Shown here: one piece after another, positions 53,501-56,500 of the stretch | Layout of the letters: each line of letters begins with the position of its first letter | Numbering within the stretch: position 1 is the first letter of the stretch | Source: Macrostomum lignano | Taxonomy: Eukaryota | Direction: 5' to 3' | Assembly: GCA_002269645.1 (NCBI GenBank) | Contig: NIVC01001836.1 | Coordinates: 1-64,000 of the forward strand | DNA: 64,000 nucleotides | Translations under genes and position numbers: made by a program | Notes under the pieces: generated by a model | Seen by the model: the letters and a program-made list of their open reading frames with translations, nothing else | What the model was told of the DNA's origin: nothing | Databases searched by the model: none

Positions 53501-56500
53501 TATCTATCTATCTATCTATCTATCTATCTATCTATCTATCTATCTATCTATCTATCTATCTATCTATCTATCTATCTATCTATCTATCTATCTATCTATC
53601 TATCTATCTATCTATCTATCTATCTATCTATCTATCTATCTATCTATCTATCTATCTATCTATCTATCTATCTATCTATCTATCTATCTATCTATCTATC
53701 TATCTGTCTATCTATCTATCTATCTATCTATCTATCTATCTATCTATCTATCTATCTATCTATCTATCTATCTATCTATCTATCTATCTATCTATCTATC
53801 TATCTATCTATCTATCTATCTATCTATCTATCTATCTATCTATCTATCTATCTATCTATCTATCTATCTATCTATCTATCTATCTATCTATCTATCTATC
53901 TATCTATCTATCTATCTATCTATCTATCTATCTGTCTATCTATCTATCTATCTATCTATCTATCTATCTATCTATCTATCTATCTATCTATCTATCTATC
54001 TATCTATCTATCTATCTATCTATCTATCTATCTATCTATCTATCTATCTATCTATCTATCTATCTATCTATCTATCTATCTATCTATCTATCTATCTATC
54101 TATCTATCTATCTATCTATCTATCTATCTATCTATCTATCTATCTATCTATCTATCTATCTATCTATCTATCTATCTATCTATCTATCTATCTATCTATC
54201 TAGCGCTTACCGCGCCCATTGGCTTTCCAGCTGCCTTAATCGTTTCCGGTGATCTTGTGTGCGTGCATTCAGCTTGATTGGCTGCGGCAAGCAAGCTCGA
54301 AAGAGCTCGCTTCGCTCGCTCTTTCTCGCTATCTACCATCTATTGCCAGGACCTGCACCGGAGCGGTTACGAAAATTAGATTTCTCGGTAGTTGCTCGCA
54401 CTCTTTTGCACTACTTGAGTAGTCTGATTTTCGAACGGCAGGCTGGTTCCAGCAGGTAGTTCCTCTGGATAAAAGCGCTTACCGCGCCCATTGGCTTTCC
54501 AGCTGCCTTAATCGTTTCCGGTGATCTTGTGTGCGTGCATTCAGCTTGATTGGCTGCGGCAAGCAAGCTCGAAAGAGCTCGCTTCGCTCGCTCTTTCTCG
54601 CTATCTACCATCTATTGCCAGGACCTGCACCGGAGCGGTTACGAAAATTAGATTTCTCGGTAGTTGCTCGCACTCTTTTGCACTACTTGAGTAGTCTGAT
54701 TTTCGAACGGCAGGCTGGTTCCAGCAGGTAGTTCCTCTGGATAAAAGCGCTTACCGCGCCCATTGGCTTTCCAGCTGCCTTAATCGTTTCCGGTGATCTT
54801 GTGTGCGTGCATTCAGCTTGATTGGCTGCGGCAAGCAAGCTCGAAAGAGCTCGCTTCGCTCGCTCTTTCTCGCTATCTACCATCTATTGCCAGGACCTGC
54901 ACCGGAGCGGTTACGAAAATTAGATTTCTCGGTAGTTGCTCGCACTCTTTTGCACTACTTGAGTAGTCTGATTTTCGAACGGCAGGCTGGTTCCAGCAGG
55001 TAGTTCCTCTGGATAAAAGCGCTTACCGCGCCCATTGGCTTTCCAGCTGCCTTAATCGTTTCCGGTGATCTTGTGTGCGTGCATTCAGCTTGATTGGCTG
55101 CGGCAAGCAAGCTCGAAAGAGCTCGCTTCGCTCGCTCTTTCTCGCTATCTACCATCTATTGCCAGGACCTGCACCGGAGCGGTTACGAAAATTAGATTTC
55201 TCGGTAGTTGCTCGCACTCTTTTGCACTACTTGAGTAGTCTGATTTTCGAACGGCAGGCTGGTTCCAGCAGGTAGTTCCTCTGGATAAAAGCGCTTACCG
55301 CGCCCATTGGCTTTCCAGCTGCCTTAATCGTTTCCGGTGATCTTGTGTGCGTGCATTCAGCTTGATTGGCTGCGGCAAGCAAGCTCGAAAGAGCTCGCTT
55401 CGCTCGCTCTTTCTCGCTATCTACTATCTATCTATCAATCCATCTATCTATCTATCAATCCATCTATCTATCTATCAATCCATCTATCTATCTATCTATC
55501 TATCTATCTATCTATCTATCTATCTATCTATCTATCTATCTATCTATCTATCTATCTATCTATCTATCTATCTATCTATCTATCTATCTATCTATCTATC
55601 TATCTATCTATCTATCTATCTATCTATCAATCTATCTATCAATCCATCTATCTATCTATCTATCTATCTATCTATCTATCTATCTATCTATCTATCTATC
55701 TATCTATCTATCTATCTATCTATCTATCTATCTATCTATCTATCTATCTATCTATCTATCTATCTATCTATCTATCTATCTATCTATCTATCTATCTAAC
55801 TATCTATCTATCTATCTATCTATCTATCTATCTATCTATCTATCTATCTATCTGTCTATCTATCTATCTATCTATCTATCTATCTATCTATCTATCTATC
55901 TATCTATCTATCTATCTATCTATCTATCTATCTATCTATCTATCTATCTATCTATCTATCTATCTATCTATCTATCTATCTATCTATCTATCTATCTATC
56001 TATCTATCTATCTATCTATCTATCTATCTATCTATCTATCTATCTATCTATCTATCTATCTATCTATCTATCTATCTATCTATCTATCTATCTATCTATC
56101 TATCTATCTATCTATCTATCTATCTATCTATCTATCTATCTATCTATCTATCTATCTATCTATCTATCTATCTATCTATCTATCTATCTATCTATCTATC
56201 TATCTATCTATCTATCTATCTATCTATCTATCTTTCTATCTATCTATCTATCAATCCATCTATCTATCTATCTATCTATCTATCTATCTATCTATCTATC
56301 TATCTATCTATCTATCTATCTATCTATCTATCTATCTATCTATCTATCTATCTATCTGTCTATCTATCTATCTATCTATCTATCTATCTATCTATCTATC
56401 TATCTATCTATCTATCTATCTATCTATCTATCTATCTATCTATCTATCTATCTATCTATCTATCTATCTATCTATCTATCTATCTATCTATCTATCTATC

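Follow-up and report, generated by a model that had tools for sequence, protein, structure and literature searches.

Hammerhead-free 272-bp multimers, probably the terminal module of a Penelope-like element, in (TATC)n tracts of Macrostomum lignano

Penelope-like elements (PLEs) are transcribed as multimers, form tandems, carry pLTRs and give rise to non-autonomous head-to-tail derivatives (PMC11167929, PMC8557442). The canonical PLEs with a C-terminal endonuclease are reported always to bear hammerheads (PMC8557442). Tandem units of 150-1000 nt with type I hammerheads are also found in the animal non-LTR retrozymes (PMC7229834), which are related to PLE pLTRs and have been proposed to derive from them (bioRxiv 10.64898/2026.07.22.740005). 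Non-autonomous derivatives of the Naiad/Chlamys PLEs, such as MRC1 of Chlamydomonas, share their 3' end with the autonomous element and are present as multicopy head-to-tail insertions (PMC8557442). In the case of Poseidon PAc of Anolis, a multimeric transcript and an internal initiation of reverse transcription were described, and the hammerhead was dispensable for insertion in vitro (PMC11167929). We have analysed a stretch of 64,000 nucleotides of Macrostomum lignano (contig NIVC01001836.1, positions 1 to 64,000), termed the window, which contains a PLE and two arrays of a 272-bp unit. These two arrays, both within the 64-kb window, are the entire sample.

The units were counted in register from the 3' end of each array. 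Array A on the minus strand (38844-40698, 1855 bp) has 6.82 units and begins at unit position 50, and array B on the plus strand (54202-55424, 1223 bp) has 4.50 units and begins at unit position 138. The incomplete first units are 223 bp long in array A and 135 bp long in array B. When the 11.3 units were compared within and between the arrays, 0 mismatches were found over 3,078 bp, and TRF reported a period of 272 with a score of 3717. The perfect multimers of 6.8 and 4.5 units and the two partial units, described earlier in a sequence-only reading by eye, were therefore exactly as claimed. Both arrays terminate in ...CTCGCTATCTAC (the terminus is also written CTATCTAC), followed by (TATC)n, and start at differing internal points of the unit, as had likewise been observed. 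With random breakpoints, a common 3' end would be expected with a chance of 1/272. The internal unit-unit junctions were identical in 10 of 10 cases, with no nucleotide gained or lost. They read TATC-TAC|CATC-TATT, which corresponds to four degenerate TATC units, so that target-like sequence is found at either end of each unit. The other tandem arrays in the window had 84-97% matches, compared to 100% in arrays A and B.

The 272-bp unit is non-coding, since the longest stop-free stretch in a 6-mer was 68 amino acids. A GAAA-capped hairpin proposed for positions 54287-54315 was present. Two CCAAT boxes had also been proposed; the motifs exist, but the sense strand of the element reads ATTGG (offsets 153 and 212) and CCAAT is on the complementary strand. 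Folding of the unit RNA gave -104.9 kcal/mol with z = -4.17 for the sense strand and z = -3.89 for the antisense strand. No similarity was detected when the unit was compared with the leader of the PLE and the rest of the window, and no copy was found by exact-pattern scans in collections of metagenomes, prokaryotic genomes and viruses. Exact look-ups of four ORFs of the window led to no other contig. A tRNA-like or SINE-like origin of the unit was rejected because it has no box B and no tRNA; the search of the whole window against Rfam gave just one weak tRNA match that was unsupported by ARAGORN.

A long PLE copy lies on the minus strand 68 bp downstream of array A (33856-38775). It consists of a leader, an ORF starting at 38535 with the N-terminal motif NLS..LT..E..LEKG.NF (.P), and a reverse transcriptase (RT) region whose conceptual translation shows DKG, the RT motifs 1-7 and the thumb. 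RVT_1 matched a fragment of this copy with E = 1e-5. Among protein representatives, 15,561 matches were found, the best being P0001 with 68% amino acid identity in the RT domain, and tblastn showed that the copy is collinear with P0001, P0004 and P0005. The long copy has the PLE-specific RT motifs and is a Penelope-like element. It is damaged by one TGA stop, two frameshifts and one nested insertion. The insertion is a 1.66-kb foldback-like DNA element in the ORF (35291-36948), which is not part of the PLE; its subterminal 14-bp arrays are inverted, and its target duplication is CAAAATT. Reading the in-frame TGA as selenocysteine, as in Naiads, was rejected because the closest relative has a Gln at this site; a TGA at a Gln position together with two frameshifts indicates decay. 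An N-terminal endonuclease of the Naiad/Chlamys type was also rejected, since no GIY-YIG was found in the N-terminal ORFs. The copy breaks off directly after the RT thumb (LIRDA|), at residue 272 of P0001, and hence the endonuclease and the 3'UTR are absent from it.

A second piece of the PLE is fused to the 5' side of array A (40699-40970, minus strand). It comprises 271 nt and one extra C (40699) at the junction. This piece spans the leader (240 nt) and the initial 145 nt of the ORF and is shorter than the same region of the long copy by a 113-bp indel. Its identity to the 5' end of the long copy is 99.6%. A retained or spliced intron was rejected as an explanation of the 113-bp difference because neither strand has GT..AG at the boundaries, and we regard it as an indel between subfamilies. 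Both the fused piece and the long copy begin with GAGCAACACCC immediately after (TATC)n, which defines a terminus of the element. Array A and the long copy have the same orientation, array A being the upstream one, with 17 TATC units between them. The arrays had been called 5'-truncated. Their 5' ends do vary, but array A is joined via the extra C to the 5' end of a PLE.

The closest relatives of the PLE show what may follow the break in the window copy. P0001 extends beyond this point with a CX3CXXC linker and a GIY-YIG domain, and its GIY-YIG region aligns with the Pfam-supported endonuclease of P0005 at E = 6e-16. In the closest relatives, the endonuclease is found before, not after, a PIVxPY..AAYT..NLKD module. 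Their elements terminate in family-specific microsatellites, (TCTCTCTG)n, (GT)n, (ATGT)n or (TC)n, and one of them, L028, has (ATAC)n on both sides. In 5 of the 13 closest relatives (L001, L002, L008, L028 and L075) the motif GCCAG(N0-4)TGCA is located 18-83 nt past the end of the ORF. The background was 11 matches in 784 kb on both strands, so that about 0.02 matches are expected in these post-ORF stretches. The 272-bp unit contains GCCAGGACCTGCA at unit positions 9-21 (for example at 54345-54357, plus strand). It was found in 10 of the 10 units that cover these positions, at 54345, 54617, 54889 and 55161 on the plus strand and at 39095-40467 on the minus strand. An extended form, TGCCAGGA-CTGCAC, is common to the unit and to L001, the closest relative. 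The unit RNA bears the GCCAGGACCUGCA motif and a CUAUCUA end. The 3'UTRs of the relatives are about 120-270 nt long and the unit falls in this size range. Beyond the motif, no similarity was detectable between the unit and the 3'UTRs of the relatives; the local alignment with the L001 UTR had a z of about 2.6, a value that 300 shuffles can reach.

The unit was then analysed for hammerheads. CUGANGA, for which the sequence-only reading had looked on both strands without success, was indeed absent from either strand of a 272-bp dimer. When one mismatch in the core was allowed, together with helix II and GAAA, the unit again gave no hit. The motif scan was also negative in the PLE region of the window and in the 13 closest relatives. 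Applied to 79 relatives, the same scan was positive in 16 on the ORF strand and in 2 on the other strand. A search against Rfam gave nothing for the unit at E <= 10; it recovered just 1 of 6 control PLE hammerheads, which leaves the core-motif scan as the decisive test. A hammerhead seen by eye in the L001 3'UTR (CTGAAGA...GAAA) was rejected, since it has an extra base before helix II and failed both the scan and Rfam. Among the sequences scanned, the PLE subclade of the window copy seems to be hammerhead-free.

Array B contains no RT sequence according to tblastn and lies between two TATC tracts (52459-54201 and 55425-56903, plus strand), in agreement with the earlier description. The 5' tract has the variant units AATC, CATC and TGTC and one copy of a block X, and the 3' tract opens with block X. 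This block is composed of [3]AATCCATC[3]AATCCATC[3]AATCCATC[36]AATC[2]AATCCATC, where [n] stands for n TATC units. On the minus strand, the fused element is preceded by a (TATC)~350 tract (40971-42373), which has block X followed by 25 TATC units. The 17 units from array A to the long PLE copy are pure TATC (38776-38843), and the truncated copy is followed on its 3' side by 16 + 2 TATC units and then by unique DNA (33778-33855). Block X is placed upstream of array A and downstream of array B. The higher-order variant block is common to the microsatellite tracts with unit counts of 35, 35 and 36, and from these near-equal counts we conclude that the loci have undergone copying at the DNA level or gene conversion with each other. 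An inverted segmental duplication as the source of both arrays was rejected because the flanks are not collinear. With respect to the TATC strand, all three insertions (the two arrays and the PLE copy) are oriented alike.

The fusion of array A to the PLE 5' end and the post-ORF motif in the relatives suggest that the unit is most likely a 3'UTR/pLTR module of a PLE. On this basis we consider it probable that the 272-bp unit is such a module of an endonuclease-bearing, Neptune-like PLE family that inserts into (TATC)n, and that it exists as head-to-tail multimers. As no copy in the window joins ORF, endonuclease and unit, we infer the contiguity of the coding 3' end with the unit from the 13-nt motif and the 5' fusion. 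The sequence-only reading had proposed a non-autonomous, TATC-targeted unit. It was right that the unit is non-coding, anchored at its 3' end and tied to a PLE, but the unit does not look independent, given the array A fusion and the post-ORF motif.

In the mechanism that we propose, a PLE-derived RNA would carry several units at its 3' end. The GIY-YIG endonuclease of the element would nick (TATC)n, and the RT would start the cDNA at ...CUAUCUAC, where CUAUCUA can pair with a (GATA)n primer strand, and copy the RNA in the direction of its 5' end. The RT start would then account for the fixed 3' end, and truncation or deletion for the variable 5' end. Array B would be a 5'-truncated copy whose synthesis was halted within the fifth unit, and array A a non-autonomous derivative that kept the true 5' end of the element and lacks the coding region from 145 nt into the ORF to unit position 50, possibly lost by an RT template switch or by deletion. 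The first multimer may have arisen by template jumping of the RT or by unequal exchange. What we infer is the assignment of the unit to the 3'UTR of this very family, a linear multimeric template and the origin of the first multimer. Since target-primed reverse transcription (TPRT) of a linear multimeric RNA would yield the same 3' and different 5' ends, neither a 272-nt circle nor a non-canonical ribozyme is necessary. The identical junctions are expected from a templated junction, be it in a circle or in a linear multimer. However, 0 differences in 11.3 units are easier to obtain from a one-unit template, such as a circle or a reused monomer, than from an old multimeric master, and a 3'-truncated PLE copy between TATC repeats is not predicted by simple TPRT.

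The arrays could instead have been built up unit by unit, either by end-to-end jumps of the RT between putative monomer RNAs, from the 5' end of one to the 3' end of the next within one insertion event, or by repeated precise insertion of full-length monomers, each of which would restore a TATC-like target at its 3' end for the next one. The target-like sequence at both ends of the unit, visible in the junction TATC-TAC|CATC-TATT, favours this possibility, and the two ATTGG boxes, which precede the unit boundary by about 60 and 120 nt, would be compatible with a transcription start at this boundary. Template jumping by PLE and R2-type RTs and the insertion of PLEs into their own copies are known (PMC11167929). 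However, all ten junctions are clean, whereas the junction of the PLE piece with array A, the one certain switch or deletion, has an extra C, and we regard the build-up as unlikely.

A further possibility, to which we give still less weight, is an independent retrozyme-like unit, the view taken in the sequence-only reading. A 272-nt circle, generated by an unrecognised ribozyme or a host enzyme, would be copied by the PLE RT in a rolling-circle mode, leading to perfect multimers in which the start is fixed and the stop varies. The 0 mismatches in 11.3 units and the 10 identical junctions are in line with this, as is the strong structure of the unit RNA (sense z = -4.17). The size of 272 nt is within the 150-1000 nt of the animal retrozyme circles (PMC7229834), and retrozymes are thought to be PLE pLTR-derived (bioRxiv 10.64898/2026.07.22.740005). 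On the other hand, no hammerhead core was found on either strand with one mismatch allowed, by a scan that does detect hammerheads in 16 relatives, and Rfam was blank at E <= 10, which is a weak test with 1 of 6 controls. Because array A is fused with the 5' end of the PLE, a linear PLE RNA must have taken part in the same reaction anyway, and the equal folding of both strands is expected from DNA inverted repeats rather than from a selected RNA structure. A more far-reaching version, which we consider quite improbable, is a hammerhead-free counterpart of the retrozymes that is excised and circularised by a new self-cleaving motif or a host enzyme and rolling-circle copied by the telomerase-related PLE RT. 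The same RT might, by copying the CUAUCUA end over and over, also generate the long (TATC)n tracts, and this would account for the variant block beside the element at both loci.

An ordinary satellite, in which duplication of one insertion was followed by expansion through unequal crossing-over or replication slippage and the arrays are related by DNA rearrangement, is very unlikely. The window is packed with tandem arrays, the variant block counts of 35, 35 and 36 point to DNA-level exchange between the loci, and satellites born from PLE termini have been discussed (bioRxiv 10.64898/2026.07.22.740005). Yet the flanks are non-collinear, with block X upstream of A and downstream of B and the PLE piece in A alone. 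In addition, the other window arrays have 84-97% matches and not 100%, and the common 3' end, the differing 5' ends and the constant orientation to the TATC strand are a signature of 3'-primed copying. With their common 3' end, 100% identity and non-collinear flanks, the arrays do not fit a classical satellite expanded by unequal exchange, for which array ends at no fixed unit position, diverged units and common flanks of duplicated arrays would be expected. An assembly or polishing artefact that made the unit identity or the copy numbers unreal is hardly credible: perfect identity over 3 kb might be produced where assemblers and polishers homogenise kilobase-long microsatellites, but the two separate arrays differ in flanks and lengths, have precise, interpretable junctions and, at 1.2 and 1.9 kb, are well inside single long reads.

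Compared with the animal retrozymes, the arrays have in common the short non-coding head-to-tail units, the association with a PLE, the probable origin from PLE terminal non-coding sequence and the structured RNA. They differ in that the 272-bp unit lacks the hammerhead, the defining feature of retrozymes, in that they are strictly embedded in one microsatellite, and in that array A still bears the 5' end of the PLE; a circle is only putative here. The Neptune/Nematis-type PLEs (PMC8557442) resemble the window family in the RT motifs and, for the closest relative, in the linker and GIY-YIG. They also have a microsatellite insertion bias, which was attributed there to the CX2-5CxxC linker (PMC8557442), and a terminal sequence in tandem upstream of an ORF copy, an arrangement that array A and the long copy may reflect. 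Unlike them, the window family and its 13 closest relatives have no hammerhead, the target is (TATC)n and not (TA)n, the terminal module is present in up to about 7 copies, and the endonuclease of the closest relatives precedes the PIVxPY..AAYT..NLKD module.

With the Naiad/Chlamys PLEs (PMC8557442), the family shares the missing canonical hammerhead and the strong microsatellite targeting. Their endonuclease is N-terminal, whereas that of the closest relative here follows the RT. Like the MRC1-type derivatives, the arrays are multicopy head-to-tail insertions in the target of the autonomous family, (TATC)n; array A has its 5' end in common with the autonomous copy. The MRC1 type has a common 3' end with the autonomous element; in the window the autonomous copy has lost its 3' end, and the 13-nt motif is what the unit has in common with the 3'UTRs of relatives. 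As in Poseidon PAc, the locus is tandem and a fixed RT start would set the 3' end of the copies. The PLE piece of array A ends 145 nt into the ORF, near the PAc RT initiation at 111-118 nt, which is a resemblance only. The PAc start site is not homologous to the target, whereas the CUAUCUA 3' end here matches the target repeat, and no 'tail' signature was seen.

We conclude that the locus is most likely not a new class of element but a variant within the known PLE-derived tandems. Its novelty is moderate and lies in PLE-derived, retrozyme-like arrays that have no hammerhead and belong to a PLE subclade in which hammerheads also seem to be lacking. Retrozymes were recently proposed to be non-autonomous offshoots of PLE termini, and the locus shows this architecture still attached to a PLE and free of hammerheads. 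The subclade apparently has no hammerheads, and each family has its own microsatellite. If confirmed genome-wide, hammerheads would not be required to make or spread such multimers. The family would then offer a natural system for the choice of microsatellites by the PLE endonuclease and RT, and it would connect the activity of PLEs with the origin of satellites within very long (GATA)n tracts.

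With TRF, a period of 272 was found in both arrays of the non-coding unit, array A at 38844-40698 on the minus strand and array B at 54202-55424 on the plus strand. Counted in register from the 3' end, array A comprises 1855 bp or 6.82 units and array B 1223 bp or 4.50 units. Over the 3,078 bp of both arrays together, there were 0 mismatches to the unit. Since the remaining tandem arrays of the window have 84-97% matches, such perfection is unusual here. Both arrays end with ...CTCGCTATCTAC followed by TATC repeats, and their partial first units are 223 bp (array A) and 135 bp (array B) long. 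These results bear out the sequence-only reading, which had described perfect multimers, identical between the two clusters, with the same 3' end and different starts. The 5' truncation it proposed does not fully describe array A, whose 5' side is fused to a 271-nt piece of a Penelope-like element (PLE) and not simply truncated, and its 'CCAAT boxes' read ATTGG on the sense strand of the element. All ten unit-unit junctions are identical. They read TATC-TAC/CATC-TATT (the slash marks the junction), which is four degenerate TATC units, so each unit is a core of ~257 bp with target-like ends. The CpG observed/expected ratio, 1.06 in the unit versus 0.67 in the window, fits with the zero divergence of young arrays.

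Array B sits within a (TATC)n tract of 4.4 kb and lacks a fused PLE piece; a single nucleotide, its first base, is shared with the flank. About 640 bp after this tract, ~419 copies of the heptamer AGAGAGG begin (57541-60442), with only G and A on the shown strand. Another ~6 kb (14581-20671) are a 32-bp satellite (AATATGGGAGTAGATTTTACTGATGGATTTCC and variants), with a short inverted stretch adjoining the main array at 14708-15186.

On the minus strand, locus A starts with (TATC)~350 (42373-40971) and continues with the 271 nt starting GAGCAACACCC (40970-40700), a single extra C at the junction (40699), array A (40698-38844), 17 pure TATC units (38843-38776), a 4.9-kb element that likewise starts with GAGCAACACCC (38775-33856) and 16 + 2 TATC units with unique DNA beyond (33855-33778). 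The sense strand is the TATC strand for all three insertions, the two arrays and this long copy. The 271-nt piece corresponds to the first 385 nt of the long copy minus a 113-bp indel (identity 100% in a 104-nt and 99.4% in a 174-nt stretch), and runs through the 240-nt leader to nt 145 of the ORF, whose ATG is at 38535. Because the piece and the long copy begin at the same nucleotide directly after the microsatellite, this is a defined element terminus. An intron was rejected as the origin of the indel, since GT..AG boundaries are absent on both strands. The piece and the one untemplated C (40699-40970) add up to 272, the unit length; this match may be a coincidence, at roughly 1% a priori.

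The conceptual translation of the long copy contains the N-terminal PLE motif ..NLSTHNLTDSEIEVLEKGQNF.PAP, split by a nested insertion, and further on the DKG motif (IVIKPADKGSNLVILD), RT motifs 1-7 and the thumb. By these motifs, the long element is a PLE. The copy is decayed: one TGA interrupts it, a T run carries a frameshift, and 2 nt are deleted. The nested insertion in its ORF (35291-36948) is a foldback-like DNA element of 1.66 kb, which has a 7-bp target duplication (CAAAATT) and carries a 14-bp repeat (GCTAGCAGATTTCG) in inverted subterminal arrays. Its removal restores the PLE motif LEKGQNFVPAP, and in appearance it resembles a foldback or hAT-like non-autonomous DNA transposon. Elsewhere, at 28122-29955, ORFs on either strand have integrase-like and RT/RNase H-like sequence of an LTR retrotransposon, in the window's highest G+C (0.58).

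When 210 aa of the RT were used in an exhaustive profile search, 15,561 matches came up, the top one being the PLE protein P0001 with 68% identity. Past its thumb, P0001 goes on with a CX3CXXC motif (CNLDCRLC) and then GIY-YIG, a region that aligns with the Pfam-supported endonuclease of P0005 (E = 6e-16). From this linker motif of the closest relative, the window's PLE family is provisionally classed as Neptune-like. The long copy matches only residues 1-272 of P0001, and no match to the rest was found elsewhere in the window. It is therefore cut off directly after the thumb (LIRDA/TATC...), so that the family's endonuclease and 3'UTR are not readable in the window. Beyond the cut at 33856 come 16 pure TATC units, and beyond array A there are 17. 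Simple target-primed reverse transcription would not be expected to leave a 3'-truncated retroelement with a clean repeat tail; either the element brings along a short TATC tail or the 3' part was lost later.

In L001, the metagenome contig encoding P0001, the ORF is followed by a ~240-nt 3'UTR and a (TCTCTCTG)n tract. A scan of metagenome contigs added 78 PLE loci to L001, making 79 relatives; the 13 closest are L001-L011, L028 and L075, of which L002-L011, L028 and L075 are collinear with P0001. Their 3' flanks are (GT)n in L002, (ATGT)n in L003, (TC)n in L004, L005, L007 and L011, and (AACCCT)n in L075, and the 5'-truncated copy L028 has (ATAC)n at both sides. Members of the subclade thus insert into microsatellites, each family into a repeat of its own, in agreement with the insertion bias described for PLEs with a CX2-5CxxC linker (PMC8557442). 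After the more distant L012-L014, L016, L018, L023-L025, L029 and L030, telomeric repeats of the (CCCTAA)n type stand on the ORF strand, and the L014 ORF is also followed downstream by a tandem array of 4.1 copies of 245 bp. The closest relatives (P0001/L001 224-1717, P0002, L002-L011 and L075) have GIY-YIG between the RT thumb and a PIVxPY...AAYT..NLKD module, which in P0005 comes before the endonuclease. Judged from these sequences, the domain order may be a clade-specific PLE rearrangement.

No overall similarity was found between the unit and the 3'UTRs of the relatives. The top local match to the L001 UTR was TGCCAGGA-CTGCAC against TGCCAGGACCTGCAC. The motif GCCAG(N0-4)TGCA occurs 18-83 nt past the ORF end in 5 of the 13 closest loci (L001, L002, L008, L028 and L075). 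Given 11 occurrences in 784 kb on both strands across the 79 loci, ~0.02 are expected in 13 stretches of 100 nt, where five were observed. In the window, the motif is at unit positions 9-21 in 10/10 units that include these positions. The relatives' 3'UTRs are ~120-270 nt long, in line with the length of the unit. Because of the motif, the 3'UTR size and the fusion of array A to a PLE 5' end, the unit is most likely the 3'UTR or terminal (pLTR) module of the window's PLE family, inferred from parts, as ORF, endonuclease and unit are never contiguous in the window.

The unit dimer contains no CUGANGA on either strand, and the earlier observation that the hammerhead core is missing holds. Rfam gave no match in the arrays at E <= 10, a weak test, since at E <= 1 only 1/6 relatives with clear PLE-type hammerheads was reported, and that below the gathering score. 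At gathering scores, Rfam found no ribozyme in the whole window. A tRNA match at 372-440 (33.1 bits) was barely over its gathering score; ARAGORN found no tRNA in the whole window. Because of the weak Rfam test, we scanned for the core CUGANGA, a helix II of at least 3 bp and GAAA. This detected hammerheads in 16 of the 79 loci on the ORF strand versus 2 on the other strand, typically CAC-CTGATGA-GCCCATAAAGGC-GAAACC. None was found in the unit even when one core mismatch was allowed (random expectation 0.007), in the PLE part of the window or in the 13 closest relatives, whose contigs are short. Within these short contigs, the subclade appears to lack canonical hammerheads, whereas they are reported as universal in PLEs with a C-terminal endonuclease (PMC8557442). 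Folding predictions give a strongly structured unit RNA (sense -104.9 kcal/mol, z = -4.17; antisense z = -3.89), both strands folding alike as expected from inverted repeats in DNA.

The (TATC)n tracts of both loci (52459-54201, 55425-56903 and 40971-42373) have in common a higher-order variant block X, [3]AATCCATC[3]AATCCATC[3]AATCCATC[35-36]AATC[2]AATCCATC, where bracketed numbers are TATC units. Array B has one copy of the block at its immediate 3' side and another within its 5' tract; at locus A, the block lies 25 units upstream of the fused element. The two loci are mutually inverted and 11 kb apart. Near-equal unit counts in such a fast-mutating repeat mean that the microsatellite itself was copied very recently. 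Because the flanks of the two arrays are not collinear, the arrays did not arise by simple duplication.

The simplest account uses known PLE properties alone: tandem loci transcribed as multimeric RNA, GIY-YIG nicking, a fixed RT start, frequent 5' truncation, and tandem and non-autonomous head-to-tail derivatives (PMC11167929, PMC8557442). A tandem PLE locus would be transcribed into multimeric RNA, the GIY-YIG endonuclease would nick the target, and the RT would start at ...CUAUCUAC, where CUAUCUA can pair with a (GATA)n primer strand. Array B would then be a copy truncated in the fifth unit, and array A a derivative that lost everything from ORF nt 145 to unit position 50 by a template switch or a deletion. 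The extra C fits with an RT switch. Such a switch would lie 145 nt into the ORF, near the 111-118 nt where the RT of an Anolis PLE initiates (PMC11167929); as a single case, this is a lead and nothing more. The unit junction is compatible with end-to-end template jumps, a circle, or duplication between microsatellite flanks followed by expansion in register; that all ten junctions are identical speaks for a templated one. The interpretation first given is supported in part: the PLE link, the 3' anchoring and the lack of a hammerhead stand. On the evidence of this one window, an independent element, a circle and a hidden ribozyme may exist but are not needed.

The arrays act like an animal non-LTR retrozyme or an MRC1-type non-autonomous PLE derivative. 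They are not a retrozyme by definition, because the hammerhead was tested for and is absent; their place is among the PLEs. The novelty is in how the features combine: the PLE family is (TATC)n-specific, its terminal module is multiplied to ~7 perfect copies, the hammerhead expected in this clade is missing, and one array is still fused to the 5' end of the element.
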